A DNA stretch of 64,000 nt from Pocillopora damicornis (GCF_003704095.1 NW_020847747.1:310001-374000), one strand, 5' to 3'; positions 4,948 through 33,588 are shown, counted from the stretch's first letter. The notes: generated by a model not told the origin, from the letters alone. Numbers and translations are program-made.

Positions 4948-7900
4948 CTAATAGAAACGGGAGTGAATCAAAGATGTGGAAACGAGTTGAAGACATACCA
5001 TTTTAATATTACCTGACTCGACATCGATGACCTGAACGTTGGTTTCCGTGCCACCAAACTTTACTTCCACCCTTAATTCTCGGTCACATCCCTTAGCAGT
5101 GTTAGGACTGGGAATTAAAATTTCGACGTTTTCACTTACCACTCCGGGATCGGAGATAAAGTCAGCTTCATCTTCGTCTGTGCTGTAGAACTTGAAAGAT
5201 AATGCCGTCGAATCCGGATTGATGGGAAAAAAATTGTACGTTCTTTTCTCGTCAATGTCTATTCGTTCCCCTTTCTTGGCTAGGGTTTTAAAAATGTCAC
5301 GACAGTACACTTTCTCTCGACTAACTAATCGTTTCTCGAGCGGATGTTTTTCAGGATCGAACACAATACAGGTATTTAAACCATATGTCTTACCCATGAC
5401 CCTGGCTCGAAGTAAACTCGGTTCTTGGGCAAACTCTACAGCACCACGAATAATGGCGAGTTGGGGATCTGGTGGTATAAGAATGCGTTTGTCAGGAAAG
5501 CAGCGGGAAATTTCCCTCCTTAAAAACTGAGCTTCAGAAAAACCACCGACGAGAAAAATTGTCTTTACATCTTGAAGACTTTGCTTAGCGAGCAAGCTTT
5601 TCATCTTCTCCGCAATCTTGGTCACAATTGGACGGTGCAGGTTGCCAAGCATTCCCATGGTTATGTTCAAATAGTCGCTGCTGACACTCACATTTTCAGG
5701 ACAAGATCGCCGAATTCTCTCATTGATAGCATCATCATCTTCTTCAATGTCATGATGACAAGACTTTATAAAGTTTAAAGGGAGAGCGATACTAATTTCA
5801 TCGTTGTCCACTTCCTCTTCTGCCCTCTTCTGTTCCTCAAAGCGGTTCATTATGACTTGCCAGTCATTCGGGAATTGTTCTTGAAATCTTCTGATGAAGT
5901 CGTCTCCAAATGCTTTTATCATCAGTTGCTCAAATTCTTGGTCAACATGAATGCCACCAAAGGTACCGCCAGAGGGACAGTGTTTTTCCATAATATGTCC
6001 GTCATCAGCATTAACTTCGTGAACGGTGATATCTAAAGTTCCTCCTGTGGAGCAAAATTGAGTTAATATCTCACCTGTAAATTAGCTTCGATATTTTGTG
6101 GGAATTACATGACTAGCGCGTGGATGAGGTTTCTCATCTGTTTTGAATCTGATTGTATACACTCTCCTATTTAAAATGTTCTAATTTTATTCGTAAACGT
6201 TCTAGCCCTGGTCCTGTGCAGGTTGTGAAAAACACCGTCGATGGCCTGGCCACGATCCTTACAAATTTTTTTTCCTAACTATTGAAGGAGTTAGAACCCA
6301 CCTCCATTATCCACCACCATGTATGGAACTTTTTCCATGTCCAAAGTGTCCTTCACCAGCTCTTTTCCCTTTTGTCCCTTAAACATATCGAAAGGCAACT
6401 TTCTACAATAGTACGAAGCGGCTTCAGGTTCAAGGGCAAGGATGAGTTGGTCAGGATCCTCCGGGCTTGCAATCCCAGCCTTGAAAGAAACAAACGGGTG
6501 AGAAACTTTTGAAAGAGGTGAATCTCCCTTCTTTATCAGCCACGATTTAGATAAATCTATAGTTTGTTAGCTGGGTAGGTATAGTTAACTTGTATATTTT
6601 CATTTTTTTTTTGTATACAGTTTTCCCCTTTGAATCATAGGGCACATCGGAAAAAGGCTGCATTGATGTTTCGAGCATCAATTTTAAATCTAACTTAATA
6701 CTGCAAAAACAAGAATGGAAGGTATCAGTTACCTTATAAGCAGCTTTTCTCATGAATTCCTTGGCAGAAATTCGCCATATTGCTGGAATTGTTATCACCC
6801 ATTGGATCTGTTCGGGTTTGTACATAACTTCTGTGTTGGGATTGTCCTTTTCTGACCGGAGATGCCGTTCGTTAACGACATCTGTCGCAGTTTTCTTCAG
6901 GTACTCAAGGCACTTTGCAAACACATCCAAGGCAAGCCACTTTTTCCCATTCCTGGCCTTTACCTCTGTTCTCTCATTTAGGTCCTACATAGATTTAACC
7001 GCGACAAAAGTTCATGAACAACTCTCACCCTGACTTTGGGTAACTTAAATTCCTTCCGCTGGAAGATCGAATTTTCTACCATACTATCAGCTAAATGAGC
7101 AACGATAGAGGAATGGTAGTCAAAGCAACACATTTCTACTCAGTGGATTATCCCCAAGTCTTAACAAAACTTCCTTTCTGAAGAGATGAAAAGAAAATTT
7201 AGGGCGGAAGGGTTTGGAAAAATAGAAAGCAAAGTAGCGAGCTTTCCTCAAACGTCCTTGTATTTTCTTTTTTGAACGCTGCAAACATCGACCAGACGGA
7301 CAAGCAACATTGCTTGGATCTTGTGTTTTCGATATTTTTTGCAAAAGAATAGCAATGAAATAAAAGAAAAACTAAAAAAGACCTTAAACAGTTTGAAAGT
7401 TCGTTTTCGGGTGTAAAGAATACCAGTTCAGAAGAAAAATATGTTTTAATCGTCCTTGACGTCTAACTTTTACTGTGGTGGCATTCAACGTACAAACCTA
7501 ACCCTAACCCTAACCCTAAGCGAGAATTGAACCATAATTTGAAAGCTCTGACGGTTTGGGTACCGCGATATCCGTATAAAGCCTCATGCGTGATGTTACG
7601 TAATTGTGTCAAGTAATTTTGTGTATAAATTAAGTCCTCTGCATCAACTTTTATGTCCACTTTTAAAGAAGCAGTCGTCGTTTTCTGCCTGTAAAGCTAT
7701 GTACCGTCAAGGTTAATATTTTGCTGTGGGCTTATTTGTGAGTTTTCGTTCTCTAATGTGAATTTTCCTACTCATGTTTAGTGCTGTAGGCGTTTTGATG
7801 TTTTTAAGTAAATAATGAATCGAATTACCCGTGCCGGTGGAATTTCTGGGTGGTCGGGGCGTCCGGACTCGTGAACTCACAGCGTTTTGCTTCCAATGGA

Positions 7901-9054
7901 TTCGTTTGGTTGGCGTTACTCGCCGAGGTATCTTGGAAGCAGATGAACTAAAACCAAGCTAAGTTTCCCTAAATCAGCCCAAGAAATTCACACGATGCAA
8001 CAGAAAAACCGCTTGAGCGGGGTAAATTTATCCTGATTCAAAACTAGTCCAGATTTTATAAAGGTTGAGAGCGCCAATGTTCATTTCCATGCAAATCCTT
8101 TTACTTCACTAGGAGCCCAGTGCTCCTATCGCGCAACGTGAGCTATTTGCATATTCACAAAGGCTCAGTGTGTGAGCTTGGGTGTCCTGTGGTTGGACTT
8201 CAAAGTAGATAACAAAAAGATTTCATTCTTAACGTTATCTTCTTTATACCCGAAAACGAAATTTCGAACAGTGTTAATGTATTTTCAGGTTTTATTTTGT
8301 TTCATAATTACTTTCTCTTCATAAACGAAAAACTAAGGGTAGTATCATTCGTGTAAAAAAGGGTCCAAAGAATGTTGGCCAAAAATGTGAGAAGAGTTTT
8401 AATCGAGTGAACTCCTTATTCAGGCGACTGAGTTATGTGGTACAATAATAATTTACTTGCTGCGTTTCTCGTTCAATAATGATGGGAAATATATGAAAAT
8501 CATATATGTGCACTGCAGTGAAGAAATGAGATACAAGCGATCATAGCAGCTATGAACACTACTGAACTAGTAGTTGAAATAAGACCTCAAAAAAAAAAAA
8601 TTCAGGCCCACGCGGGATTTGAACCCATGACCTCTGCGATTTCGGTGCAGCTCTCGGTTGTGTTTATATGTAAGATTTTATGCTAGTAACTAACAGCGTA
8701 ATTTCTCCCAGTCAGTTGTGTTTATATTTAAGATTTTACGCCAGTAACTAACGGTGTAATTTCTCTCAGTCGGTAGTCTTTATATGAAAGATTTTATGCC
8801 AGTAACTAACTAATTTCAATAGTTCGAATGCAGTTGTTTGTTCACATCTAATTCTTGCGTATACTGTACGACTCGCTATAATGAACGCGGTAGAATTGGA
8901 ACGAAATGGCTGGGTTTTTTTTTTACCTTTATTGAAGAAATGTTTTGTTGTGATTGAAAAGAACATCGAAAAGCTTGCAAATAGAATTAGTTACTAAATA
9001 TGATACAAAGAATGCTTAAAAGGAAAGTTTGGTAGGGGGGTCCAAATCTGCGAA

Positions 9055-9085
<31 letters not shown>

Positions 9086-12000
9086 GCTATGACACCGGGT
9101 CGCATTACAGACGATTTTGCAGAATATTGTTTACTCAAGGGATTAAAATCTGTCAATACATTTGTTTTCTAATGCGACCATTTGTGATTTTTCAAAAATT
9201 TAAAATCGGTAAAAAACATCACAGACGCTGGTGTGCTTGGGTAGGCCTGACCAATTTTTCCAAATCTCGAAAACCAAAGTAGCCCGCCGCCAAAGCTGTC
9301 AACAATTGAAAAGAATGACCCAACATAGACGGCAAGGTCACGAACGTGAAAAAGAGCGCGGAATTTCATCGTTCACACTGACGTTTTTATTGCGTGCAGT
9401 TCGAAGCTACAACATGGACAAGAAAGATTTTCCTTTTCCTTATTACAGCCATCAAATGCCAAGAAGTGAACAGTATTCCTTCATTTATGACCTGGGCAAC
9501 ATACCCCCAATTTGGCCTGTTGTGAGCGCCGAACAAAGAAAACCTGTGAGTCACTGTTACCCTGTTCGGCCGCATGGTAAGTGTCGTGACTGAACTTAAT
9601 TTCACCTCTCAAATTTCCCATGTGATTGACGCTTGCATTTTCACTCGTTGAAATGCGACCGTATAAGCTCAATTTTATTTTCATTTCCGGTCTGATGCAA
9701 TTTGATTTTCCAGCCGATTTTTCAAGCCAAAAACATAGGCATGCCTAGCATGCAATAGTTATTTTTTTGGCTGAGTGGGATGAGATGGGACAGTTTGTCT
9801 AATTACTGTTTTCATTTTTGTCACCGACATAACATAACTTTCAAAAAACGAAAATATCGCAGAAAGACAGAAAACAACCTAATTTATCTGAACTCACACA
9901 GATATTATATGCTCTACTGCCTCTATTGTCTAAATACGTCTAAGTTAAAATGAAATGCATCGGTGCCACGCTTACTGTTGTCTCCTTCGCAGCCGTTGTT
10001 TGGTCTCGTCATACAACGCCCTCTATTTTCCCGTTTGAGAGAGAGCGCGCGTTGCGTGACGATACCAAATAACGGTTGCGAAAGAGACTACGCTTACTGC
10101 CGTTCCTCCAACAGCGAGAAAATCAAAGTTATTCGTCCACAGTTAGTTACCTCAAAAATATAATTCCGCGTAATTTTACAACGAAAAGCAAACTGAAACT
10201 CTGTTGTACCTCTAATAGACCTTAACCAAAGATATATTGCGATTCTCAAATAAGTGAAGATACATTGAACAAGAGAAAGGATAATATTTCAAAGAGGACT
10301 CCTTGATTGGTTGTTAACTATCTGGGCTTTGCCTGCTGTGTGTGAAATGTGTGATAAAATGCAAGTTGTTTTACAATGAATTAATACGCTATTGGGTTAA
10401 GTCCAAGGTAGCTTAAAGCGACTTTAATTCGTAGAAAAAGTCAAACGCGGGAGGATTGCGTAGAAAACTCAATATCAGTAGCATTTAGTTCTACGTGAAT
10501 TTTTTTCATAGGGATTGGACAATGCAGTTAGAATACGTAATAAAATGCATGTTGTTTACAAGAAAATAACACGCGATAGAGCAAAGTCCAATGTGGCAAA
10601 ATGGAATCTGATTGGTGGAATACAATTCAAGCACGTGAAAAATTGCCTAATGCTCATGTAGGACAATGATTAGGTATGTTCTAATTGGTCTTTGGACGTT
10701 GTTTTCATGGCGCGTGATGTAATATAAGTTGTTTGGCGTGTGTTTTGAATAAAGGACCGGAAAAGACACGTTTTGACTTTAAAATTTTAAATGTGTACTC
10801 TTCATATCCCGATAAATCTCGACCTTAATCGACGAGGCTCTCGCGAAGGCCACATACCATTACACTTACCAAATGAGCCCAAAATTTCTGGCTAATGTCA
10901 TTCTTTGATCTATGACATCATTTACAAGAAAAAAAATACCCAAATGCTGTGATTGGTGCAGGATATTCAAATGCTATGATATGATTGGTGCGAGATACAT
11001 ACCCTAATGCGGCAATCTGATTGGTGCGGGACACATACCCTAAACGATCTGATTGGTGCGAGCAACATACCACTCGATACGCTAACATGGAGTTATTAAT
11101 GAGAACCAGCCCTATTCAATTTTCTGACACGATCCTGCAAGGTCCCTTATTCGCGAAGTGAAAATTCCGCAAAATCTTCATCTTTCAGGGTTGTAAATTA
11201 ATATTTCATTGTACATCGTTATTTTGCATAATTTCACATGCGAAATAAAGAGGCTTTCAGGCACTTATTATGATATCTTCTCTTTCTGGTCGAAGCGGTA
11301 GCTCACTAAGGACGTTGATCGTCATTTATGTTGACATATCCTATTATGAATTGAGCAGTAACAGTTTTTTGCCGATGGAACAAGAAAGCTGCAATGCCAG
11401 CTCGAATAAAGAACCATTCTCAGACTCCTCCTAAAAATGAAGTTGGCATAAGCCTGCACAAAATTTTGCTATGATGACATAAAGAATAATTGCGTAGGCG
11501 CAACTTGCTACTACTGCTTCTAAATAAGTACGGTGACCCATCACTGTCTTTAAAAAATTTTACATCGTTTCAATCACTTTTAGTGATAACCATAACAAGT
11601 ATGGAGTTTCCGCGTTAATTTACCACATCGTTGCGAAGTGTTTTGCATCACAGACTAAAAGAAACAGAATTGTACGGTTCCTACGAGAACATTTGAAACG
11701 CACCGACGAACTTTAGTCGCTAGTTTGGTAAGCATATTCTATTTAACCCGAAAATTTGGTCGGAATCAGTAAACGTTACGACAAGCAGACAACTTTACAC
11801 TGCTAGTTTCGATTACTCACGGATGATCTGAAAACCATCAATAACAAATGTTGACACGTAAGCAATTAATGTAGAAGGAAAATTATGAACCGGTTCAGAC
11901 TTACCTTTTTGGAATGGAGCAGAAGTTTGAATTTATCGAAATACAAAAGCTTTTTACAATCCTTCTTTGACATCGCTTGTTTCCCGTACGTCTCTACTGC

Positions 12001-12213
12001 AGCATGTCCAAACTTATGGAATTCGCCTTTCTCGGTGAGGAGGAGAGCTGTTGGTGTTTTTCCGTAGCCCATTCCTTGTCCTCTTCCCCACTTTTGAAAC
12101 ACGTAGATATGATTTTGAGATGCGTTCAGGAAAACGTATCCAAATCCACTGTAAGTAGTGCCGAAGTCGATCGCAATTATGACATCTCTTTGAACTGGGG
12201 TTTGAGAAGCCAT
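4948..12213 (-). CDS. HSPA12A: Heat shock 70 kDa protein 12 (HSPA12A/B)-like atypical Hsp70, ~611 aa, 4 coding exons
   Basis: Exons 12213-11905, 6984-6733, 6479-6302, 6044-4948, phase-consistent. Motifs IAIDFGTTYSG, KTPTALL, WVITIPAIW...AKEFMRKAA, LALEPEAAS, VVDNGGGTLD, FLVGGFSE, FGGTE typical of HSPA12; no EEVD tail. Confidence 0.92.
7496..7519. repeat. Short interstitial (CCCTAA)n telomere-type repeat
   Basis: CCTAACCCTAACCCTAACCCTAAG in HSPA12 intron 1. Confidence 0.6.
8489..8655 (-). mobile_element. tRNA-derived SINE-like remnant
   Basis: Minus strand GAGAGCTGCACCGAAATCGCAGAGGTCATGGGTTCAAATCCCGCGTGGGCCTGAATTTTTT: B-box/T-loop GGTTCAAATCCC without a complete cloverleaf. Confidence 0.6.
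8654..8810. repeat. 58-bp tandem repeat, ~2.7 copies
   Basis: Units start at 8654, 8712, 8770, e.g. TCAGTTGTGTTTATATTTAAGATTTTACGCCAGTAACTAACGGTGTAATTTCTC. Confidence 0.85.
9036..9098. repeat. 3x GGGGGTCCAAATC subterminal-type repeat ending TGACACCGG; probable DNA transposon end
   Basis: GGGGGTCCAAATCTGC, GGGGGTCCAAATCCGC, GGGGGGTCCAAATCCGCTATGACACCGG; no partner end found in the window. Confidence 0.55.
9978..10090. mobile_element. Fold-back MITE with 9-bp target-site duplication
   Basis: ~40-bp imperfect inverted arms GTCTCCTTCGCAGCCGTTGTTTGGTCTCGTCATACAACGC / GCGTTGCGTGACGATACCAAATAACGGTTGCGAAAGAGAC; CGCTTACTG duplicated at 9969-9977 and 10091-10099. Confidence 0.8.
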
Positions 12214-12548
12214 GGTTTCGAAAATATCCTTCAAGTTATGCAAACAGAAACAATCATGAAATCGAAAGAAATCGTCTATATCTCGAAAGAAATTTGTCGA
12301 CACCACGGATCAAATGTTCCATAATATTATTTTATCTACATAAGACTATCAAATTTACCAAATCTGCGACTGAATGATCGAAAAGAAGACTTACAAACAG
12401 TCCTCTTCGTGTAGCAGCTGCACAGACTCCTTGTCTATTGTTTTTTTAAGAATCATATGATATGATTCCTAGAAACGATACACCCAAATTCTAAGAAATA
12501 AACAACGCATTTCCGATGTGTTGTTGAACTTGTTGAGATTTGTATTTC
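12214..12548. promoter_or_regulatory. Shared region between divergent start codons (5' UTRs and probable bidirectional promoter)
   Basis: Only 335 bp separates ATG 12213 (-) and ATG 12549 (+). A minus-strand GTAAGT donor near 12393 suggests a non-coding HSPA12 first exon, narrowing the promoter further. Confidence 0.6.
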
Positions 12549-14788
12549 ATGGGATCGTGTCCCTCGACACGAGGTAAAAGGACGTTTATTAATCAAAAAG
12601 TAAGCTTCGAACATTCTACTGGGAATCGCGCCGAGCTATTAGGCACACCGATGAACGAGAGATCCAACGCAGGTGACTTCAACTCCTTCCTGGAGCTCCA
12701 AAATGGCGCGGCGAAGATCGCGAAGCAGTGGTTTGAGAAGGCGAGCGCACTGTCAACAGAGAATCATGACCTGAAAAAGCAAATCCAAAGTTTGCGACAA
12801 AGGTAAGTTGAAGATTATTTTTTTAGATTTGAGGAAACATTCGAGAAAAGGATTCTTAGATTCATGGAAATCATTTAGTATCGATTCAAGCTTTCTTTGC
12901 CTGCAAGCTGCAGTTGTACTGATAGCCTATAATTTTAATTCCTCTTCTTCATTAGGATTGGCGACGACTCAGAAATGGATCATCGTTGTTACCAGAGCAG
13001 TTCTGAGGACATTACAAGTAGAAACAAGCGAAGTGATGTTGTAAAAAAGTTCAAAAGAATAGATGGTGCTCCACGCAGACAAGCGATCGAGGCATTCGGA
13101 AAACCGGATAACAGGAGTGACCTCTGGTACAGAAAGGATGTGACATGCCGTATATTTGTGGTAATATAATAATCAGTAAATGAACCAAAGATCCTTTAAC
13201 TGTTTACAATCTTTAAATTTACTAGGTCAACTCTCTAAACTACGCCGTACTTCTGCATATTGTTTATATTTTTTTACCAAGAGTATCGGATAACATCGTC
13301 CAAAACGAAAGCCATGAGTTATAATTCATTTAAAAACAACACTTGTCTCCATTTTAGCGAAAGGCGTATCTTTTGTTCTACTCTAAATCCAGTAAGTAGA
13401 TCGAGATACAGCTTCGAGGTATTGACCGTCAATTTGACAAATCCTGTGTCATAAAATTATGTTTACCGTAATTGATTCGACAATTCTCGAAGATTATTGT
13501 TTTTCTTTCAAATCTCCTAAAGTTCTTGTCACAAAGATATCTTCGCGTAAGTTACCAGCTTTCGTTTCCTCGAGGGCGACTGACATTTCTACAACTACTT
13601 TAGGAAGAGTTTATAAGCTTGTTAACATTTTGTTTGAATATCGAACATGCCGCTGTCAGTCAAAGAGTATATCACAAGGAAGTGAGCACCTTATGTTAAA
13701 ATTGAAATGACGTTATTTTCCCAGGTGGCACATGATGTTGCAAAATCCACAAAATCTGCATTCGCCCAAAGTGTTTTGCCGAAATTTTTCCAATGTGCAC
13801 CATCCTTAGGAGTTATTCACCAAACGAAAGGATCTAATTCCCCAGAGGTAAATCAGTTAAAAAATGCTAGATACCGTGTTATGATTACAATTATCATGTT
13901 TGTGGCCAGGAATAATATAAAAGAAGCTCTTTCCCATAATGTTAGCGACGATGATGAAGATGATTGTTCTTATTATTAGTAGTATTATTATTGCCTTTAC
14001 AATCATTCCGCTTCATATTTTTCATGTTCTTAAGGAAATGGCAGTCAGCTATGACTTAACAGCCCTGAGGTTTTTTTTGACCCCATAGGCATCAGAGCTT
14101 TTTGAGAAGGGTATGCAGGAATCTATCTCAAGGGAAATGGACTCCCTATTTTTAGGGGAGTCCTTCCAAGTCGCTTGCTCTTCTGTACTTAAGGAAATGG
14201 CAGTCAGCTGTGACTTAACAGCTCTGGAAGAGGTAATTCCATTTCTGAACTTTTCGCAAAAAAATATAAAATAATTTATTTAAACATTTAGTGTCGCGTC
14301 AGACTGGAGTACAATTAAGTATAATTCTAGACAGACTAAAAGAATCACTCAACTACGAGGAAAATCGATTATTTTTTTCAACAGCCAAGTGCTTGCCCAA
14401 TATTTGCATGATTTTCAAGTTTATTCTTTTACAGAAAACGGTTACAGAGTTGAAGAAATTTCGTGATCAGTGGAGAAAAGAAGATCCTTTGCTGCCTTAT
14501 TTAGACGACAATATTTTATTAAAAATGAAGAATTTCATCGCAGAATGCGTACAAATTTCCTGGAGAATGGTAAACCAGCTTCCACCAATAAAGATTACAC
14601 AAGCAAATAAAGTGCATGGCGAGAGATTTGAGGAATTCTTTGAAATGGAGGAAGAAGAGGTTACAGAGAGGGCGTCAACCGTTACCATTTGTGTCTGGCC
14701 GGCTCTAACTGACTCCGAGGGCGACGAGGTGCTTGCCAAAGGAAAGGCGGCTATAATTCCAAGATCCCAAACACATACGTTCGTTTGA
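12549..14788 (+). CDS. Coiled-coil plus mitochondria-eating protein (MIEAP/SPATA18) C-terminal-like domain protein, ~335 aa
   Basis: Exons 12549-12573, 12643-12802 (or read-through 12549-12802; alternative ATG 12651), 12956-13160, 13725-13847, 14089-14232, 14435-14788, phase-consistent. N-terminus MGSCPS, coiled coil ASALSTENHDLKKQIQSLRQR, SEDITSRNKRSDVVKKFK, C-terminal FIAECVQISWRMVNQLPPIKI...VTICVWPAL...EVLAKG resembling the MIEAP domain. Confidence 0.8.
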
Positions 14789-17115
14789 AGTCATGGACTC
14801 CTTCTTTCTTTTTTAGCACACCAGTTATTAAGATCATCTTCGCTAATGGCCAAGTTTTAAGTGATCTCATGAGCTTTCGGAGCAGCTTATATAGTTAACT
14901 TCCAAAGGCATGTGAAATCGATTTAAATTGTAGTATTCGATGCATTAACTCGATTGAGTTGCACGCTCAACCGAGGCAAAAACTGATAGGCTACCACCAT
15001 AAGCGTAGGTAAAATGAGAAGTAATAATAAATATGTAACTGTCTAAAGATAGAAAACAATGACAAACATCTTTTCGCGACTGCAAATCTCTCAGTTAGAG
15101 GGAAACCTCATTATTTCTTACGTAGGAAAGGTTCAGGGCTTAGTTTATGTCTTTGTAGTAGACCGGCAATGGGAAATCGCAAGTTGCCAAATCGTAAGAA
15201 AAAGAATTAGACTTTATTCCTATTGAAAAGGATCCTTAAAAACCGTCGCATGGATGACAATGGAGGTCAGCGTGAAGTAAGCCATACTGTTTTAATTCAA
15301 AAAAAAAAAAGTATATTCAATTTTTTATACATAATCTGGGTAATAGCAAAAAGCAAGATTCTCACTGAGATTCTCATAGCTGGTTTTTAATCAGCCACGT
15401 TATTAGATTTGAACAATTTGGTTAAAGAGAGCATAATTTTCTCTTGTAGCTGTAACTGTATATCAACAACACTGGAAAACAACTGCCACTTCTAATTCTA
15501 ATGCAACGCTAGTCATGAAATTAATCTGTGAAAATGATTAAAGCGATTTACGTCGCATCAGACTAAACTCACTGCTTTGATCAATGTAGCAGTATAGTTT
15601 TTTTTTTTTAATTTCTTTTTCTTTCGATTTTGGAAGCCTAGAGATGCCTCAATCAATTTTTTGTGAAGTGGACACACTTATTTATTCCTTTTTTTTCAGT
15701 ATACCTCAGGTATTTGTTTATTTTACTGTTCTCGAGAATTATTGTTGATGTATAATCAGGATGTGTACATGAATGGACTAAGCACCACATAGACCTGACA
15801 AGTCCTGACTAAATAGACATGTCCCTTCTTAAACTTAGCTGCTCAGGCAGATCAGTTATTTCTAAATTTCAGCCAATAGCCTGCAAGAATTACTTTAAAA
15901 CGGGAAAAATTGATGAAAGGCCGGTTAATTAAACTGGTCTTCTCGTTGAGTTCTAACCTATAACGGATCAAAGTCAGACTCGTCATTGTTTTTTCATTGC
16001 GAGGTCGTCACCTCTAACTTTCAAGTCCACGCACAAAGGAATGCTTTATGTGTACTGAAGATAATTACACTTAGAGTTAAAACTGTTTTTACTTGGCATT
16101 ATTTATTGAGGGCTTTGAAAGCAGTGTCAGTGCAAAACTAGAGACGCTGCCTACAGCTCCCAACTTTCAAATGTTATAAAAATCCATTAGGAATGGATTT
16201 TAAAGGCTGCCAATTTCCTAACCTACCAAAAACCTTTATAATTTACTAGTTAATTCTGTTGTTTTTAATACTAAAAAAACAAGACAGGGAACTCACGAAA
16301 TTAAAATTAATTTTCCATAACGGCGCACTTTGTGAAGTGAGTATGCATTCAGCAATTATTTCCAGTGTACTAATTTAGCTTGCTAATTGCAATACCTGTA
16401 TCATTTAGTGGCATTTGATGGGACCTTGTTTTTCCCAAGAAAAGAGATTCATTTTCGTTTCCCTTTCACCCTTATTTCAGGAAGAAAATCTTATAAGCAG
16501 CTCAATCGAACCAACTTAACCATTTTCAAACCCAGCCATAGGACATAAAGGAGCGTGATTCACATACCGTAAGTTACCCATAATTATTTTACCAAGCGTA
16601 GGTATGCCGTCTGAAACCAGTCTCGAACTCAGACCCTCCCGGTCATAATTAGGATCTGGAAAGACCGGCTGCCGTCTTGACTGAGAAACATCCGGCGATG
16701 AGGTTATTAGGTGCGTCTAAGGGTGTCACATTCATTTTCTTTTAATGGATTTCATATGACCAGACTCTCAAGTAAGCCACTTGAGAAATAAGAATGGAGC
16801 GAAATGGTCCATAACCAGTGTTTAATTAATAGTCACTGTTATTTACACTAATTAGACGCCCGCCAAAAGAAAAGAATGGTCTCATTAATTTCTCTTAGCG
16901 CCTACTTGTGACAGAAATATCTAGACTCCTTAACAGCAGGCTTCAACCGAAACTGAAAACACACTAAACCGTTCCGTAAGATTGGTTTTGTAATTTGATC
17001 GCCCAACCTGCCTTGGGTTTACATTTTCTTCAAATAATCATGATCACTGTACCTTCTGTACGCAATAGTTTTAACCGAGTAGTCAATCATTCTCTCCTAA
17101 TTTTTTACTGGTTCC

Positions 17116-17306: not shown

Positions 17307-19390
17307 TGGGTAATGATACCTACAAGTCTCCTGTTTATTCTCGTATCTTTAAAAACGAAATGCTCCGTTCTCCTTGGCTTGGTCCATTGAAAGCTACAAT
17401 ATTCTAGAACACAGACAAAATCATTTATGATGCTGATGAGTAAGTTTTGGAAAACAATTTATACTGAGAGAAGACAAGATATTCCATTAGAGTCGCTAAA
17501 TTAATCTTATTTCCATTTAAGTTTTACGTGTCGAAAGGAAACCTCAAATTTTGATTTCAATCCTTTTATTAAACCGTCTCTTATACCTAACGTCGCCAAC
17601 TGGGTTAAAAGCAATTTCTTGTTATGCATGACACGCTTCTTTTCACAGTCGTTTACTAATTTAAAATGCAAGAGTTTAAAGAAACTTAAAAAAATCGTCA
17701 TCTTCCTTCCAAAATCAGTCTCAGAGAGAAATACTTTATTTTCGCTTTTGTCTCAAATACACCGCCACAGAAATTCAATTTGCACGCAAATAAATATATT
17801 TTAACTTTTCTCATTCAAGATGATTAAGAACTTAATCAAACTTATGTTTGCGCGGCCTCACTGTGACAAGTGAGTCACTGCAAACTTATCAACCAGAGCG
17901 CAAACACGATACAAAGTTGAAAGAAAGCCATTCAAACGAAGAATTTGTGAGAAAAGGAATGACACCTTCAGACGTCTTAATTGCAAAAGTTAGGGAAAAA
18001 TTTAAGAGTGAATCTCATAAACTATTGGTCTCTTCATTTGCCAAAAATGTTAAAACAAAAAAAATCACGGTTTTATGCTATTGCTTTTAGATTATATCCG
18101 GAGGTGTTTGCTAGACAAACAGGATACTCACGAAATGAAAATTACTATTTCATTACCGCTCGTGTTGTGAAGTGAGTCTACAATCAGCGATTATTTTCCA
18201 TTTTATTGATTTAGCTTGCTATATGCAATACCGTGATTTGCACGTATCAAGAACGTCTGATCGAAAATTGCTGTTTCCGAGCGAAGAAAATATGCACTTT
18301 CGTTCCTTTTTCTCTCTATTTTCATACAGAAAATCTTACACCAGCCTCAATCTAACCACCTTCAATGTCCTCATATTTTGAGTTTTTTGTAAGAAGCGGG
18401 GAAATCAAGTTTCTGATTGTTAAAGTTTGTGATCGAAAACACGAACTTCTTGTAACCGTCTAGTTTACTAATAAAGATTCTGTGAACAACGAATATTTTA
18501 AAAACACATAGACAGATGTTGTGATTTTTCCCAAAAAGCGCTGGGACTTCAGTCGCTTGAAATCTAAACACAAATTATTTACAACAAACCAGACGACATA
18601 TGTTCACATTTTATTGCATTTTCACTCTTTCAGCGTTCTACTGGAAAGCTTCTAGATGTATCTACAGAAGTTTCATTCAATTATCTTACACGGATTTTAA
18701 CACAAGATTTGTCCAATTTACAAGTTTTTTTCCTCACATACAATTTCGATCAAGCTCCCGTTGATACCATCCCGTTGCCGTATTTACAATTGAAGCTGAT
18801 AGAGAGGACATCGGAGCGTACTCAACGTTGATGAACTATCTGTTGTCAGCTTTCTCTGTCGTGAAGATAAATAAATTAAGAATTGTTTATATTAGAGTAA
18901 TTTAATTTTCAATTTGCTTATTCTCTCGCACGCCACCCGCTTCTCATCGAAGTTTGCTGGGAAATGTTATTTCTGCATTTATTTGAATAACTTATATTAC
19001 AATTTTGAGGCAAAATTTCTAAAATGACTCACTCGTATCTTCGATATTGATGCAGTGAACGAGAATGGAGTACGCGAACCATAAACTAGTTTACTGCAAA
19101 TCGACACACATGTGATTTGGCAAAATGGAGATGTCTTCTTGCCGTGCCACAATCTAAGTTTCAAGTTTATGTTCTATAAACTGCTGTAACTGACCACCTA
19201 AAATTGTAATTAACTTCGAAACGAGATTTCATGTCTTAGGATGATCAAAGAAGAAAGTTTCTTTCGTCAGGTACTTGTCCATATATGATCGGCGAGCGCA
19301 GCCCATTGCATAAATTAACACTTTCCAGACGTCTCCCGGCATAAGTTTCTGTCGTCCTCATCAATTTTTTCCTCACGTTCCTCAAGTTAA

Positions 19391-19942
19391 TCACTTTGCG
19401 GTCATGCAGTTCGTCAAAGTATCAAATAATTCACCGATTTTCCGAGGCAATGCGAAAATAACTTTAATCTCTTTCTCCTCAGCTGAATCGACTGTCCAAA
19501 TCTTGTGATTTGTAATGGTTTCATCGACGTGAATTTCACCTGCGTTTTTCGACTCGTTGTACGCCATTCTGAACGCTGAGGTCAGAGCGGCGACAACAGC
19601 TCTCGCTTCTTCGTTAGACCCGCATAAAAACGCATGACACTCTAATCGCTTCGGCGAGGACGAAACCATATAGTTAAACGCAACAACTTTGGGAATCTTC
19701 TTGTAGCTTGCGCAGAACAAAATTTTGCGTAGTTTGAAAATCTTTTCGGTGTTTTTGCTGCGAAGTGAAACACTGTCTTTAGTAACTGTCAGTTTTTCGA
19801 TGTCCCTCTCGTTAAGCGCACAACCTTTTTGATACACCCGGGCGATGTTTTCCAAAGTCCCAGTCTGTGGATACATGGCATTTTGACTTCCTAAATACTT
19901 CACGCTGCATGTGAAATCCGCTGGTTGCCGTGGCACCTCCAT
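19391..19942 (-). CDS. Intronless PTB/PID-domain adaptor protein (LDLRAP1/GULP-type fold), copy 1, 183 aa
   Basis: SVKYLGS...LTVTKDSVSL...LRKILFCA...PKVVAFN...LECHAFLCGSNEEARAVVAALTSAFRMAY matches the PID signature. Confidence 0.85.
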   Translation of the reverse strand: MEVPRQPADFTCSVKYLGSQNAMYPQTGTLENIARVYQKGCALNERDIEKLTVTKDSVSLRSKNTEKIFKLRKILFCASYKKIPKVVAFNYMVSSSPKRLECHAFLCGSNEEARAVVAALTSAFRMAYNESKNAGEIHVDETITNHKIWTVDSAEEKEIKVIFALPRKIGELFDTLTNCMTAK

Positions 19943-22900
19943 ATTCTCTCGTGTTCTCTTTGTCCCTCTCGAGTTATACTCGGCAGAATTTTGCGTAGTT
20001 CTTGATTTTTTTATTTAAATTAACGAAAGAAGTCCGTCTCCGGTGCTGTAAACACACTGAGAACAGACGCTTGTGCCTTCAGAACGCCTTTTATTTCAAT
20101 TTTCCCTAGGCGACGTGAAACAATTAGTATAATCACTCCTGTTTTGATTCACAATCATTACAGGGCAGCTGAGCGGTTTACGCTTCCTTGGGGAGTTGGC
20201 ACATTAGGATAAAAGGATTTCGCAACAATGGAGATCTGTCCTTTATCTGCTAAAGGAAAATTTCGACTCAACTGACCTTCTCAGAGATGACGCCTGTTTC
20301 AAGAGCAATTATTTTTAGGACGTCGGTGGACACGCTTGTTGGGTTTGTGTATAGATATGTGGTCTCAATATTGGCCTTTGGCGCGTGACAAAACTGCTTA
20401 TGAGCTAAAAATATAAATTAACTGCATATTTGCATTGCAAACGAAAATTGAAAATCTTTATCGACACTTTTGTTTTGGTAAGTGGCTGCAAAACAAAAGA
20501 AAAATAATCAACTGAGCCAGCGAATTAGAAATATGAAATATGTTTTCATAGAAGTTTCTCTCGGTATTGTAATTTTATTCTGCCTCAAACCGTAAAAAAA
20601 AAAACCGGAAATTATGCTCCAAAACGCTCAAGAATGATTTAGGATGAACATATTCACACTTTGCGCACGAAACACGCAAAAGAGACATTTTGAAGCCCTT
20701 AAATTTATGGGTACATTTCGAAAATTCGGATTCCTGCTTTTAACAAAAAGAGCGATTAGTTGAAGAAAGTTTTAAATGTTCAAATCAATGGTTTGATTTA
20801 ATCAAGGTGCCATTAAAAACATCGCAGAGTCTTTAACTTTGCATTTAATATTCAGTAGTCTTTTTAGTTTTCGCATTAAAATTGTGGCGCTTCAAAACAT
20901 TAGTTTTCTTTTATAGACAAGTAAAAATGTATTGAAAAACTTTTCTGATAATGGCATTCTGTACGGTTCTCGTTTGTAAGATCCTCAAAGGATTCTGTTT
21001 TAAAAACCTAAAGGCAGCTTTCTTTTGAAAATCAGAGGACCAAATTTTGTGAAAAACACACTTAATTAAGAGAATTTCGTGTTTTCCTATTTCCGCCCAT
21101 GTTATGTTCACCTCAGAACGTGTCACAGAGCATGCATATCGCAAAATTTCATAAGATCGTAAAATGCATTAGCTTAGAAGCTTTTAAGCTCCCCAAATAC
21201 ACATCCTTCATTTGTAAATGCCACCTTCCATCTCAGGTACGTGATATAAAACCAGATTTAATATAAACCATTGTTTTTTTTCTATTCAGAAACCTAGTCT
21301 TTCCAATTTCCTCTATCACGTTTCCGCTATAAGAAAAGTTGTTGATAGGCAATGTGTTTCACGTTTTCTGCTCGCTTTATTTTTCATCACCCTTAATTTA
21401 TTAGAGATTTTTTGCATTGACGGACAGGTAAAACGATGAAATAAAGAGCTTTTCTGTAGAGCAACAAATCTAGGAGATAGTAGATCCGCTTACATGTTGA
21501 AGGGCCTTTCCACGGATTATCATTCAACTGTTTTGTTCATAAAATAAAATAAAATTTTTATGATTGATATTCAAACAAACGTTTTTTTGGTGTTTGAGTG
21601 AATCTACATTTTCGTCGTTTCTGTAATTATCATTGAGTCGGATTCCAGGCAGAAAGCACATTTGATTTTTGAAAAGAATGAAACCTTTCTTTCAACTGAG
21701 AGCAAGTTAAGGAAAATATTTGCTCTCTTTGAAACAATGTCACAAGTTGAAAAAATCTACGCATAAAAAAAGCAGAGATTCCGGCTAGACCACTATGACT
21801 CTATGTACATAATTTACAAACAGCTTTATGCAGTGAAAGTAAATTCTTTGCGTGACAGGCAACAAAAAACAAACCGATAGCAACTTTTTTTTTAAAAGCA
21901 GTAGACGACAACTAATGAGTAAAGCCCCTGATAAGAAAACTGATCAATGATAAAGCTGTGAAATGGAAAAAAAAACATTTTGTAAAAACTTTGCATTCGG
22001 ATTTAATGATTTCTTCAGCAATTTTTAATGCAATGCCATGATACCGTCCTTTCTTTGTCTTGGTTTGGCTTTCATTAACAGTTTTGCACAATACAACCTT
22101 CCTCACAGAGACGACCAAATTGAAAAAATACCACAGAGAAAATTAATCCCTCTTGTTAGAAAGTACATAGTCCAAAGACTATGTAATGAATACTGTAAGC
22201 TATTGTAATTCAACAAATAGTAACAAATAGCTAGAAACGTGCCTACGTACATGCGTTCATTCGACTTGGGTGGTTAAATGCACCTAATTAATAATAAGAT
22301 TGTCACATATTTTCACTTGCAAGACAACTCTTCTTAGATGGCACAAAATCTGATCAAATGAAACTCTAAAGACTGCTGACGTAAATTTCCTGCCTAGTCT
22401 GGTAATTCAGTGGTTTTCTTTAGAGGGTCCTATAGTTGGCCTAGTCTTTACCACTTGTCTGTTTCTGGCTTATGTTGTGTCATATCGTAATACCGATTTA
22501 CACGCGTGCGTTTATCATTCAAACAACTATTTTAGTACTTTAGATATTACAAAGCCGCGATAGACTAAAACGTCCACCACTTCCGCTCTCTGCACATTCT
22601 GGCCTCATATCATGTATAAGAATTCGCGGTCGGAAACCGGAAATTATATGTATCGTTGAAAGAAACTTCGCGAAGTTTCTTTACCGATTTTGAACGTTCT
22701 TCATGGTTTCCCCACTACTCAAACAGTGTTTTTAGTATTACCACAGCCATACAAACAACTTTTCGAGGTTTAAGGTTCGTGGAAAGCCATTGGAAGGTCA
22801 GAAGACAAGTTTAACGACAAAAAGTTTATTAAATGGGTCAATATCGAGACCTACGTAACGCTGCATTACTAGGAGACGATTTTCATTACTTGCAGAATAT

Positions 22901-24757: not shown

Positions 24758-25416
24758 TAAGAAACTATTTATTAACCAACTGCTTTTTTTCTTCTGCTAA
24801 GTTCTTCTGATCATTTCTCATCACACGGGAAAAGCAAAGCGGATAGAGAAGCGTAGCGCGCGCAGCCGACTGGTTAAACAGGTTTTTTTACAGTGCAAAA
24901 TAACCTACTGTCCAAATAACCGTACAATATCGCAGGATATTTGCACTCTGTTCGCGCGTTATTTGTATTCTACTTTGTGCAGTTGGATAATAATTTTGAA
25001 TATTCACCGACAAAAAGACCGCATTTTTTACTCAGCCTCTCCAACTACCCTCCCCTCCCCCCTACTCTAAGTTTTTAAATCAATAACTGCTAACACCGAT
25101 ATGTGACAACTGCAATGATTGAAAAAGAAATCAGCATATGCCAGACTCTCGGTCGGTGGAATCGAAAACAACGTGCGAGAGAAAACCATGAAGTCTGTGA
25201 AAGCACGCCATTTTTTCCCTCCCAGACTTACACTGTCTCCATAGATCGACCACCTAGCACCGACTAAAATAAGGAAAAAATTTAGCAGTTATAGGCCAGA
25301 TTGATAGATCGAGATGATTCAAAATGCGGAGTTTTCAGCCTTACGGTCGCCATCTTGGGAATGACTGACCGAGAAAAGGTTGGGTACAGGTTTAAAAATT
25401 ACTAGCTACCAGTCTC

Positions 25417-28400
25417 CTATAATCTAGCATCCCTTTGTTGAAATAGAACTGCATTGTCCTTCAATTCATTAAGCGATTCAAGTTCGTCTCTTGTTTCAAC
25501 TATCGTGACATCAAAAGGACTTCCAGGTATATGCTGATCGGCCCATTTGATGTTAATAATGTACCGTCCCGCCTCTGTGGGGTTGTATCGCACTCCAATA
25601 GAACGCTCCTTTGATGTGTCCCGGTACATCTCCACTTTGAAGGCCCCTCTGGGTCCATGGATTCTGATCTTAAGTGTTCCCGGACCAGCACCTTTAGTTT
25701 CTACCAGGAATTCCCCCTTGAAATTTCGTAGCAATCCGTTCTCCAAACCAGGACCTATCGAGAAAATCGCAGATATTAAATCATTCTTCAGAAAATTCAA
25801 TGTAAAACTCCAAAGTGTATCTTAGGGGGCGAACAGAACGTGAAAATTACATGAGTTGACATACCGTACACACGAACTTTACTGGGATCAGGGGGCTGTC
25901 CCACGCGTACCAAAAAGGGACTTCCATGTACAGGTCTTCCTCCCCACTCCACATACACGAGATGGTTCCCAACTTCGGAAGGGAAGATTTGTACTTGATA
26001 AGTAGAATCCTTGTTGTCGAACACTGTGCAATCACAGTCTTTTGTGGGTCCTTGACAGCGAACATACAATTGCCCCGGGCCTGCATCTTTGCTGTTGATA
26101 CTGAACCCCATGGCTTGGCCCACTGTGGCTCCTGCGCCCTCCTTGAGCATGCTCCCTAAAGGTCAAACAAGTTAAACTGATTTAAAAACGTGTTTTCATT
26201 TGCGTGCACCTGTAGTTGTGCCACTGTCATTTGACTTTCTTAACGGATTGAGATAGCATCTTATTAGCTTCTTAAATTCTGAAATATAGAGCATTAATCA
26301 TGGAGAAAATTTCTTACCTTCAACAAAACAACTTTTGGCGCTCATAGCTTGTGCTTCTCTGATAGTGACCTTATAAGGACTGTTAGGTATGTGCTGTCCA
26401 TTCCACATTAGTGAGAGGACATAAGCCCCAGCCTGTGGTACCAAGTAGTGACATGCGTACCTCCCGTCCTTCAAGTCAATGACTTCTACATCAGTGTGAT
26501 ATTTGACTCCGGTAAGCTTCCCAGTCAGCTTGCCCCGGCCGGCAGTGCGGGCGTCCACCATGAAATCTATCTTCTCGTTCACCATTCCTGTGCATAAACA
26601 AAGGGCGTAAGGCATTTCCTAATAAGCAACTTGTTTACGAGTGCCTGAATTACAAAGGATATGGGACAGAAGATAAACATTCTGTATTCGTAACGATAAA
26701 ATTTTTCAGTCTCTAATTGGAAAAAAAAATACTGAATATACACACCTCCTTTAATTCCGTCTCCCGAGGCAAAAACCTTCTTATGTCCTTCGGTTCCTTC
26801 AATATTCATCATAAACGGCGAACCATCCACAGGAACACCATCGTATTCCACGTCTACTCTGTGGCGCCCAGGTCTCTTCGGTACAAATCGCACGTGATAT
26901 AAGTTGGAGCCTCGGTCGTAGGTCAGCTCGTAATCAAGTAACTCCATCTCTGGATCAGTAACGCGGCACTTGAGGTAATCTGCTGATGAACCCTCTGGGA
27001 TCATAATGGGGATGTCTGCCTCGCGGTTCTCGTAAAATCGATCGGATTCGTTGAAATTCACTACTGGGCCCCCCTGTCCCTGATCCGTGACGTTGACAGT
27101 GAAAGGAGAGCCTTGTACGGGCTCGCCCCGGTAACGAACGTCCACCTAACCAAAGTAAAAAGCCAACTGTGAGTTAATTATGTCAGCGATTTGTTTGCAA
27201 ATTTTGTTTATTTGCCGTAAAACTTTGGTTAGCCCAGCTTGGATGATTTAACTTAAGTGTTCTTTGTTTAAAAATAACTTCTCAAGAGACTCGCTTTATG
27301 ATAATAATTTTTATCCATTCTACTCAATCTTGAGCGATCACCGCATTAGTTTTTGATGGTTTTACTAGCGACTATTGAGTTTTAGGAAGGCATGATACCA
27401 GAAAATTCTCCGATGAAAACTTTAAATTGTTTTGACGGTACCATTCCGCCAAATATGCGATAAAACCCGTTTAGAAACCTAAGTCCAGAAACTTGACATT
27501 TGCGTTCCCTCACTCGCAAAAATGGTGATATAAACCGACCGTAAATTAACATTACAATCACCACACCCTCTAACAATGTCACCCCAGTCTCCAACGTCCA
27601 GCAGGGAGGCATCTTACCTTATATGGACCAGCCTTATGAGGAGTAAACCTAACGTGATGCCGATTGTCAGGCCCCTTGTTCACGTGACAGGGGACATTTT
27701 CTCCATCGGGGCCTGTGACTCTGGCGGAGAAATCTTCATCAGTCATGTCATATGAACTTTCCACGGCTAAATCCACTTCGTTCTTAATGACTCGCTCTGC
27801 AAACAGTTCCTCACTACGGACATGCGCAACTTGGACCTTGCCTGGGTCGCCGACCTTGATTAGGAATGGACTACTGGCTACTGGAGTGCCGTTACTCTTA
27901 ACATGAACCTGGGTAGACGCAAAAATACTTTGAAAATCTGAACATACTTCAAAATGTACGGACAGAGGGACGAGAAGTTATGATATTGTCAGAAATTGCG
28001 GTTTTGCGACTTATCAGTGCGTACCAGGCCGACATGATCATCACTACGAAATGAGTGAACTCGGGGAGTAGGCACACCTAATTAGTGGACAAGTCACAAT
28101 TTTTCAACTTTTAAACAAAAGAAGAACACGAAAACACGAGAGTAATCCAAAATATTTCAACTGGTGTATGTTCCAGCCGATACTCCGCACTTTCTCGACG
28201 ATGGACGAATAGTAAGCGTCACCTTCTGGTTATTCCTCCGGCTGTAAACAGGATGGAAAGAAACTACCACTTGCTATCAAAATTACGTGGCTTTTAAAAG
28301 AGGAATGTGAGAGACAAACAGACACGCAGCTCTAACAAACCGCAATGACTTGTTTGGTCTTTTGTATCAGCGTTACCGAGAAACATTTTCCAAACCGAAT

Positions 28401-31400
28401 TCTCCAGGATAAAATTTACGCCGATCTCTTACCTTGTAGGTTCCAGGCTTGTAAGGTACAAACTTAACATGGTACAAGCCATCGTCTCCTTTATCAAAAG
28501 ATGCTGGAACATTCTCCTCATCGGGTCCGTCTACATATGAAGACAGGTTCCTGGTACCTTCTGCCGCGTCAAGTGCTATGTCAAGTTCACGGCGAACTAA
28601 ATACTTGTTTTCAGACTCCTCTGGTTGGCGTAAACGAACAACGGCCGTTTTTGGCTGGGCCACGTTCAAGGGGAATGGGCTGTTCTCTACTGAGCGTCCA
28701 CCACAGCGAATATCCACCTTAGGAAAAAAGAAATAAGTTTGACGCAAGTAAGAGATCATTTCTTTTGGAAGTGGGAGGGCAGACTATTCTAAGCAACTTT
28801 CCAAAAGTAACATGTATTCATCTGAGATAGAAAAAAAGCCCTGAATCTCTTGCTTTTCCAAATTCACAACTTGGTAACCCCGGCTAAGACTCACACCGGG
28901 ACCGCTCGATTCGAAGGCCGACGCTCTTATCGCTGGGCTTCGTGCGTCTTTCAGGGACTATAAGTAGGTCTTACTTACCTTGTACTGTCCAATCTTTTTG
29001 GGAGTAAACCTCAAATGGTGAAGACCATCAGATTCCTTCTTGAAAGTTGACTTGTCAATATTTCCATCCGGATCATAAATCACAGCTGACACTTCATCTA
29101 CTTCGGATGGTATCTCCATGGGCACGTCTACCTCGTACCCCACGTGATAGCTAACTCCCTCCTGTCAGGGGAAGGATCAAAAGAACGTCACTAATTAATG
29201 CCAAACAATTTTTCTCAGTTCGAGTCTGGTTACACCTTACCTCGACTCTGATCGTCTCACACTTACGGTTATTTAGATAACAAGGTGCAAAAGAACTGGA
29301 TGGGAGATTACAAACCAGCGAGTTACCTGTTTTTCAAACTCTTTCAGTTTTACCGACACTGTCTCCGCTTCTGAAATTTTCATTACGAAGGGGCTGTTCT
29401 CTATGGACTGTCCTCCACAGCGCACATCTACAGTGTAACGACCGGGTTTGTGCGGAACAAATCTGGAATATATAATATAAGTTGGTTGCTCTTTTTTCTG
29501 TGTCACAAAAAATTTTTTTAGGATGGCATGACAAGCCCTTAGGCGTGACATGATCAACGTCACGTAAATGCTCTGTTCTTACCTCACGTGGTATAAGCCG
29601 TCTGGTTCAAAGGTCAACGTTGACTTTATAGGTTTGCCATCCTCGTCTTGGACGGTGGCGGAAATCTCATCAACTTCTTCTGGAACTTCGATAGGAACAT
29701 CAACCTAAATATGAGGATAAAACGAAAACGGTAAGGAAAAATTTCATGACTGGTGAAGGTCAGACAAACGAAAATAATTATAACATGGACCTCTTTTTGC
29801 GCTGAGTAACCAGTTCTCATCTGCTCCATCTCGGTGACCTTGACCTTCATACTGGTGGCATCTCGTATACGGATGACATAAGGGCTACTTGACACTTCCT
29901 TGCCACCATACATGACCATCACTCTGTGTTCTCCAGTTTGACGAGGTACAAACCGGATATGATAATATCCATCGTCATCCTTTGTCACACTAGAGGGAAC
30001 ACTTTCCTGGTCGGGGCCCACAACAGCAGCCTCCAGTTGGCCCTCTCCAGCAGAGCTAGGCACTTGTACAGGTATGTCCACCTCGTGACGGACAGTAAAG
30101 CGCTTTGGTTCGCGCTCCAACTCACGTGTATTCAAAGTCACTTGTCTGGGGTCCGCCACCTGATTAAAAAAAAAGGTCATATAATCCAGAACTATAACCT
30201 GTGCATAAGTAAGGAGGAAATTTTTCAACGCATTTTGGTTCAGCTCAGTTTGAAGAAGAGCCTCTTCGTGAGTTAGATNNNNNNNNNNNNNNNNNNNNNN
30301 NNNNNNNNNNNNNNNNNNNNNNNNNNNNNNNNNNNNNNNNNNNNNNNNNNNNNNNNNNNNNNNNNNNNNNNNNNNNNNNNNNNNNNNNNNNNNNNNNNNN
30401 NNNNNNNNNNNNNNNNNNNNNNNNNNNNNNNNNNNNNNNNNNNNNNNNNNNNNNNNNNNNNNNNNNNNNNNNNNNNNNNNNNNNNNNNNNNNNNNNNNNN
30501 NNNNNNNNNNNNNNTTTTGTGCAGACCCACCCCCTGAGGAGTGTACCGCACAATGTAGGTGTCCTTTTCATTAGGGGACTGTAGCAGATCCACAGGAAAG
30601 TGCCCATATGGAGCCTCGCCATACACTTTCAGTTCTCCATCACCAGCGCCATGAAGTGTAATGAAGAATTCTGCTTCAGAATCTGTAGTCACCTGAAATT
30701 GTGGAGAGATACATTATCGAAGTAAATCAATGATTTTCAAATTTTCTGTGTAGTAGTTAGGGCTTTAGATTAAGTGCTGTAAGCCCAAAACTAGAACAAG
30801 AGTGAATACGATAAGGAGTAAGGAGCCAACCAGAAATCAAAGTTAAAACAAACAAACTGCTTGAAGCACGGGAGAAAGCGGTTGGTCGAGTAACGAGTCG
30901 TTTAAGTTTTGCATCTGACTGATTGAGAGATTGACGTTGGTTTTCGAGAAAAATCGTAAATTTCTATGGTCCTAATGCTGAGAGTTTCTTAGACCTTGGA
31001 CACACGTAGCTATTGTTGTGCGTGACAGAGATGACTGCAAAAAATCTGGTTTGACCAAGACTCCCGAATGAGGAAAGAGGAATGATGATAAACAGAACCT
31101 GACGTCGTACCTGATGCAAACCATCTCCGTGAGCTACAATCCGGCTGGGATCACTCACTATCGTCTTGACTGGACTTCCCGGTATGTCATCCCCGTTGAA
31201 TACGAAGTGAATATTATATTCCCCGGGCTTGTTAGGAGTAAACGATACGTTGTATCGTCCGGGTGCAGTGGGTTTCACGTCGACAGGGACATTCCCTACG
31301 GGGCCCCGGCATTGGATAGCCAGTTCCCCCAGTCCCGCCCCGGAAGTATCAACATCGAAGGAGGAGGGACGTCCTATGGTCGGGTTGCGAGCAGTTTCTG

Positions 31401-33543: not shown

Positions 33544-33588
<45 letters not shown>

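Follow-up and report, generated by a model that had tools for sequence, protein, structure and literature searches.

The orphan chaperone HSPA12 is a protein whose function and partners are both stated to be unknown in a recent review (PMC13580251), and we found no fixed genomic partner for it described in the literature searched. Vertebrate Mieap, also called SPATA18, is described as an amphiphilic scaffold: its coiled-coil half is hydrophilic and faces outward, and its C-terminal half, which is hydrophobic, is proposed to bind lipids of the cardiolipin type and to drive the formation of condensates (PMC10845071). Here we analyze a stretch of 64,000 nucleotides from the coral Pocillopora damicornis (GCF_003704095.1 NW_020847747.1:310001-374000, which is contig C4382:310001-374000 of a 234-Mb assembly; hereafter the window), in which an HSPA12A-like gene lies head to head with a gene for a MIEAP-domain protein (hereafter the partner). 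We favor, with slightly better than even confidence, a reading in which the two genes form a conserved, co-transcribed divergent pair of stony corals whose products act in one pathway, the partner serving as a membrane-bound scaffold or adaptor that works with the HSPA12 ATPase.

Both genes are intact. The HSPA12A-like gene occupies the minus strand with its start codon at 12213 and consists of four exons, while the partner gene occupies the plus strand with its start codon at 12549 and consists of five, leaving 336 bp between the two ATGs. We modeled the HSPA12A-like gene by tblastn with the Stylophora pistillata orthologue P0002 and by reading the splice sites directly; the closest named proteins are those of S. 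pistillata, with 88% identity for the HSPA12A-like gene. The whole HSPA12 protein was studied through its orthologues P0002 (Stylophora) and P0021 (Oculina), and the whole partner as the database protein P0170, a 359-amino-acid sequence assembled from RNA runs, which the partner's exon translations reproduce without any difference. Transcripts were represented by contigs from four poly-A RNA-seq runs, each from a different study, compared over positions 11500-15100. Together, the tblastn matches, splice sites and RNA contigs bear out the initial annotation, made from the DNA sequence alone, in its description of two intact multi-exon genes on opposite strands. The features of the pair, in window coordinates, are as follows.

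4948-6044, minus strand: HSPA12A-like exon 4, the last, with the stop codon; tblastn to P0002 residues 247-610, 88% identity; AG acceptor at 6046-6045
6302-6479, minus strand: HSPA12A-like exon 3; tblastn to P0002 residues 185-248, 95% identity; AG acceptor and GT donor read
6733-6984, minus strand: HSPA12A-like exon 2; tblastn to P0002 residues 104-188, 95% identity
11905-12213, minus strand: HSPA12A-like exon 1, coding part, with the ATG at 12213; tblastn to P0002 residues 1-103, 97% identity; holds the AIDFGTTYSG phosphate-1 motif
Up to about 12424-12478, minus strand: HSPA12A-like 5′ untranslated region (UTR); RNA contigs 11904-12478 (run X4) and 11904-12424 (run X16)
12214-12548, no strand assigned: inter-ATG stretch, containing the 5′ UTR of each gene and their common divergent promoter; compared by alignment with the four orthologous loci
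12466-12485, plus strand: 20-bp promoter block TTCCTAGAAACGATACACCC; present at all five loci of this pair, in four genera; sits where the 5′ ends meet
12549-12802, plus strand: partner exon 1, with the MGSCPS N-terminus, a disordered segment and the first part of the coiled coil; alignment to P0170 and orthologues
12802-12956, plus strand: joint of partner exons 1 and 2, seen in four RNA runs
12956-13160, plus strand: partner exon 2; alignment to P0170; joint 13160-13725 in three of four RNA runs
13725-13847, plus strand: partner exon 3; alignment to P0170; joint 13847-14089 in four RNA runs
14089-14232, plus strand: partner exon 4; alignment to P0170; joint 14232-14435 in four RNA runs
14435-14788, plus strand: partner exon 5, with the stop codon and the conserved MIEAP core; PF16026 match at 14522-14746 (C4382:324522-324746)
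To at least 15100, plus strand: partner 3′ UTR; RNA contigs

All four introns of the partner gene are of the GT..AG type and are bridged by RNA contigs, three of them in every run and one in three of the four. The first HSPA12 intron is likewise supported by RNA, with contigs ending at 11904 that continue in letters matching 6984 downward. At the 5′ ends, HSPA12 contigs extend as far as 12424-12478, and those of the partner have their first base at 12484-12523; therefore the two transcripts start back to back, within about 100 bp of each other or overlapping. A single contig from run X1 spans both genes. The RNA evidence thus supports a single compact promoter from which the two genes are transcribed divergently, as the initial annotation had proposed. 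The locus resembles animal bidirectional gene pairs in being divergent, with 5′ ends less than 100 bp apart (such pairs are recognized by 5′ ends less than 1 kb apart, transcription of both genes and retention of the arrangement in other species, all of which are seen here), in having a conserved core element and in yielding both transcripts in the same samples. That core element stands out clearly when the inter-ATG stretch is aligned with the four orthologous loci: identity across the five is 58% overall, with one nearly invariant block. The block, TTCCTAGAAACGATACACCC, is matched once in the window, where 0.03 matches would be expected, and nowhere else in the 234-Mb genome. It reads as a palindromic TTCNNNGAA element, similar to the gamma-activated site (GAS) bound by STAT factors, followed by a CACCC box.

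Annotations from three other genera contain this head-to-head pair, once in Oculina patagonica (L001), once in Desmophyllum pertusum (L003) and twice in Stylophora pistillata (L004 and L005), and the distance from ATG to ATG is 336-349 bp at all orthologous pair loci. The pairing also recurs at paralogous loci. A PF16026 profile search of the Pocillopora genome returned five loci and an HSPA12 profile about eight gene loci, and an HSPA12 gene is found in three of the four MIEAP neighborhoods of the genome; by our arithmetic, a random locus would fall within 10 kb of any of the eight HSPA12 loci in 234 Mb with a chance of ~7e-4. For example, tblastn on fetched stretches revealed a second head-to-head pair on contig C138, with the genes at most 5.3 kb apart (last exon of the MIEAP-like gene at 146463-146747, minus strand; first-exon open reading frame (ORF) of the HSPA12-like gene from 152849, plus strand). 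On contig C3662 several MIEAP-like and HSPA12-like copies alternate, partly as an inverted duplication with fragments. The order within C3662:17000-79000 (L009-L014, L030) begins with MIEAP at 17426-20603 and HSPA12 at 24875-27447, both on the plus strand, and the opposite arm holds an HSPA12 fragment at 29836-28891 and MIEAP at 37889-34839, both on the minus strand; beyond 52 kb lie out-of-order fragments with in-frame stops, and the cluster may be either a real, rearranging one or an assembly problem. Similarly, on a second Oculina chromosome (L021) a 473-amino-acid MIEAP paralogue has an HSP70-family gene on either side and forms a head-to-head arrangement with one of the two, ~0.5 kb away. 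The initial annotation had proposed testing whether the adjacency recurs, and in corals it does, in four genera and at the C138, C3662 and second Oculina loci; we regard the linkage of HSPA12 with MIEAP genes as solid.

In a tree of the HSPA12 last exon, each of the three main coral branches contains MIEAP-linked copies, between which solo copies are nested, a pattern that fits an old linked pair kept repeatedly. The MIEAP tree is poorly resolved, and the partner falls in a long-stemmed, coral-only clade that includes Montipora; therefore the partner subfamily is older than the divergence between the two main groups of corals. A locus from Actinostola (L002) was considered as an orthologue of the pair lacking its partner and was rejected, since both tblastn identity and the tree make it the orthologue of the solo paralogue on C3577; it is therefore uninformative on the window pair.

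Animal bidirectional promoters often join unrelated genes, and the adjacency could accordingly signify nothing more than a common promoter: the pair would be an ancient one that sits within a slowly rearranging block and was duplicated whole, with the two proteins engaged in unrelated processes. We consider this possible but doubtful. Several observations lend it weight, and these same observations count against the single-pathway reading that we favor. The whole block is syntenic, with a WD40/LisH gene kept on one side and PID and filamin genes on the other; slow rearrangement explains part of the conservation, and because flanking gene order is conserved, the retention of the orthologous pair could be plain synteny. 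Solo genes of both families are present in the genome, namely HSPA12 genes on C3577, C1245 and C1782 and a single MIEAP locus, on C3576. The paralogous pairs may all go back to a single ancestral pair that was duplicated whole, and so are not fully independent of one another. The initial annotation had named molluscs and gene fusions as places to look for further cases: no HSPA12 gene was seen within 10 kb of three bivalve MIEAP loci (Mercenaria, Ruditapes and Potamilus), a weak negative given 10-kb flanks in large genomes, and no HSP70-MIEAP fusion protein was present among the homology matches. Larger proteins matching the MIEAP exon were evaluated as fusions and rejected, being MIEAP repeats only or false positives (an immunoglobulin protein and a bacterial MBG-repeat protein). 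Further limits bear on the single-pathway reading itself. The RNA runs were chosen because the locus was present in them, and assembled contigs speak for the presence and splicing of the mRNAs rather than for correlated levels. Finally, the reading of the TTCNNNGAA portion as a GAS/STAT-type element is drawn from its sequence, with the binding factor a prediction, and the N-terminal acylation of the partner (a myristoyl or palmitoyl membrane anchor), probable as it appears, is likewise a sequence prediction.

Against a purely incidental adjacency, the linkage is kept between paralogues of only about 30-35% identity, and it is kept in differing arrangements, which are head to head for the window pair, for C138 and for Oculina L021 but tandem for C3662. 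To this are added the narrow range of ATG spacing with an invariant promoter block across four genera, and the HSPA12 gene found in three of four MIEAP neighborhoods. It is in this respect that the locus departs from ordinary bidirectional pairs, for which it would be unusual to find the same two families paired again at paralogous loci.

The flanking genes serve here as context. The PID gene nearest the pair is the following.

19391-19942, minus strand: single-exon PID/PTB-domain gene flanking the pair; Pfam PID_2, E 5.3e-9; microsynteny marker

A PID gene of 180-183 amino acids flanks the pair elsewhere as well, beside the MIEAP-like gene in Desmophyllum and Stylophora and beside the HSPA12 gene in Oculina L001. 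The window contains three single-exon PID/PTB ORFs (19391-19942, 41918-42484 and 44652-45398) and, at 25000-35700 on the minus strand, a large filamin gene with CH domains and filamin repeats; the order of PID and filamin beside the pair is also seen in Desmophyllum.

Turning to the products, membership of the minus-strand gene in the HSPA12 family is upheld by its nearest named relatives, which are HSPA12 proteins, and by a match to the Hsp70 profile (PF00012 scores 21.7 bits on the Stylophora orthologue P0002 against a cut-off of 20.6). Its ATPase motifs are intact: AIDFGTTYSG in exon 1, DNGGGT rebuilt across the junction of exons 3 and 4, and LVGGFS in exon 4. The ATPase domain continues in exon 4, which supplies its second half, starting with the GGT of DxGGGT, as well as the LVGGFS adenosine motif and an atypical C-terminal domain, and the motif columns are invariant or nearly invariant in an alignment of 23 HSPA12 sequences. 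The coral protein thereby retains the Hsp70/actin-like ATPase motifs of HSPA12A and HSPA12B, although it falls in a coral clade apart from the vertebrate and bivalve HSPA12 proteins sampled. Compared with its paralogue on C138, the window HSPA12 has a short N-terminus and lacks ~270 extra residues. In that paralogue (C138:152849-153967, L007:2849-3967) an acidic, serine-rich extension of ~270 residues precedes the start of the ATPase domain, and the gene is paired with the most canonical MIEAP gene of the genome.

HSPA12-like HSP70 genes were also encountered in filamentous cyanobacteria (L036:4175-9490 and L038:2960-8169), where they are 30% identical to the coral protein and each follows a conserved gene of ~600 amino acids without a Pfam family. 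In Trichodesmium a DnaJ-domain gene adjoins, and in L036 a protein with a coiled coil and a helix-turn-helix follows. The ~600-amino-acid neighbor was evaluated as a MIEAP-like partner and rejected, as hhalign found it unrelated to MIEAP or HSPA12.

The identification of the partner as MIEAP-like was confirmed by PF16026, which matches the last exon above its gathering score (E 5.8e-12, 46 bits against a cut-off of 27) and P0170 at residues 272-346 (E 4.5e-12), the scores ranging from 46.4 to 46.8 bits; the match covers model positions 122-192 of 195 only. In an AlphaFold model of P0170 (mean predicted local distance difference test, pLDDT, 72.7; mostly >80 in the core at 105-355), residues 1-43 are disordered, residues 44-91 form a long helix, and ~180 residues of packed helices are accompanied by six short strands at 295-351. 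The model displays the MIEAP architecture, its N-terminal half being hydrophilic, with disorder and a coiled coil, and its C-terminal half being structured. The partner thus shares with vertebrate Mieap/SPATA18 the PF16026 C-terminal core, above the curated cut-off, and the same overall plan (PMC10845071). It differs in being shorter, with 359 amino acids where human Mieap has at least 538 residues numbered (PMC10845071), and in having a single coiled coil. It also carries an MGxCSS acylation motif and belongs to the long-stemmed coral-only clade. Most likely it belongs to the MIEAP family as a divergent form specific to corals.

The candidate anchor lies at the extreme N-terminus. In eight of 12 orthologue models the protein begins with MG, one or two residues and CSS (CPS in P0170), and in a ninth, P0166, the MG..CSS motif is internal. 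The motif, with its nearby cysteine, fits the pattern of N-myristoylation plus palmitoylation; it occurs only in the partner's subfamily and is absent from the other coral MIEAP paralogues. Its presence suggests that the target membrane may be other than mitochondrial.

Within the partner gene itself, ~40 bp from the 3′ end of exon 4 (14187-14232, encoding LKEMAVSCDLTALEE) are repeated in intron 3 at 14027-14070, a copy that resembles a pseudo-exon or the product of a small local duplication. In run X1, one RNA contig joins 13845 to 14433 through 144 other letters, possibly an allelic or alternative exon 4.

Relatives of the MIEAP domain may reach beyond animals. An ESM Atlas feature search with P0170 residues 105-359 returned no GrpE and no named family. 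The best cluster not labeled MIEAP was an unnamed Mucoromycota family of 291 amino acids (score 0.92, 177 of 256 features shared), which is possibly a distant MIEAP-like family outside animals and is offered as a lead only. Repeated MIEAP domains are annotated in P0129, a protein of 1017 amino acids from Candidatus Endonucleobacter bathymodioli, a bacterium whose species epithet refers to Bathymodiolus mussels; as the MIEAP domain is of animal type, its occurrence there suggests that it was taken up from a host.

Taking the two proteins together, we infer acylation of the partner, its binding to membrane and contact between it and HSPA12. The partner would be acylated at its N-terminus and anchored in a membrane, with a scaffold role modeled on vertebrate Mieap, which combines a hydrophilic half containing the coiled coil with a hydrophobic C-terminal one and is linked to phospholipid binding and condensates (PMC10845071); it is because of this analogy that we propose a membrane scaffold. 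Such a scaffold could recruit the HSPA12 ATPase to the membrane surface, or alternatively the ATPase might assemble or disassemble the scaffold; nucleotide exchange by the partner is not the mechanism that we favor. A gill proteomics study of the zebra mussel reports that HSPA12A and SPATA18 were both up after cadmium exposure (PMC11036304), which is compatible with this proposal, though far from proof. The orphan chaperone HSPA12 thereby gains a first candidate partner in the MIEAP-like protein.

The initial annotation had proposed a different mechanism, in which the partner forms a dimer with a divergent GrpE fold, touches the ATPase domain of HSPA12 with its beta head and thereby hastens the release of ADP, the pair making up an animal DnaK/GrpE-like module. 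There is a likeness to DnaK-GrpE in that a gene for an Hsp70-family ATPase adjoins a gene for a long helix plus a compact domain, and this genomic linkage is real. The outlines of the proteins are also alike, with a long N-terminal helix, a helical part and a small C-terminal part with six short strands, and the C-terminal strings that had been compared with GrpE are indeed present in the last exon (14435-14788). GrpE chains appear among the top weak structural matches, with noise-level scores and root-mean-square deviations of 9-18 Å, and VIA-align of the whole model and of the last exon by itself lent no support past this likeness of layout. Nor did homology to GrpE gain support from Pfam, a hidden Markov model (HMM), hhalign or Foldseek. 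Foldseek gave a best E of 0.07, with no GrpE among the best 50 matches, and the C-terminal exon modeled alone (a low-confidence model, pLDDT 68.5) likewise gave no GrpE among 50. PF01025 did not match P0170 or the Oculina orthologue P0163 at E up to 10, and a GrpE HMM that we built scored at most 11 bits on any MIEAP-like protein and 4.7 bits on P0170. The hhalign probability was 0.5% against Escherichia coli GrpE and 1.1-5.2% against GrpE alignments of seven and 10 sequences (comprising the E. coli sequence, those of five cyanobacteria and the GrpE exon of the coral itself), and a profile of 14 MIEAP-like proteins searched against PDB sequences found no GrpE at E up to 10. The coral partner thus differs from GrpE in showing no sequence or profile similarity and in having a probable lipid anchor, and its helical core is much larger, with a helical middle of ~180 residues as against ~50 in GrpE. 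Moreover, its beta part is confidently predicted only when packed on the helical core, which argues against a free-standing head like that of GrpE. The genome also encodes a canonical GrpE elsewhere, at C3883:1632122-1632541, which is its sole PF01025 match, the window not being matched. The resemblance to GrpE thus appears to be one of overall layout, homology being unsupported by either the sequence comparisons or the models, and we judge a GrpE-type module to be very improbable. Proof from structure or biochemistry should be in hand before the analogy is taken any further.

A broader proposal is that MIEAP-domain proteins are dedicated HSPA12 cofactors, whether as membrane adaptor, assembly client or exchange factor, in an old partnership that survives in corals as genomic linkage. 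We hold this to be unlikely as matters stand. In the library searched, no literature connecting HSPA12 with Mieap/SPATA18 was found apart from their co-listing in tables.

Both gene families were known, and what is new is their fixed, recurrent pairing together with a coral MIEAP subfamily predicted to be acylated. The pairing connects two stress-related families, one of which, HSPA12, is strongly expanded in sessile marine invertebrates. Because the pairing is recurrent and co-transcribed, it offers a cheap, testable hypothesis, namely that the two proteins bind one another and that the ATPase acts on the scaffold, and the linkage thereby turns the open question of HSPA12's working partner into a direct experiment. 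If the cofactor proposal were true, it would explain the multi-copy state of both families in corals and bivalves, and the biology of vertebrate Mieap/SPATA18 would also involve HSPA12A and HSPA12B.

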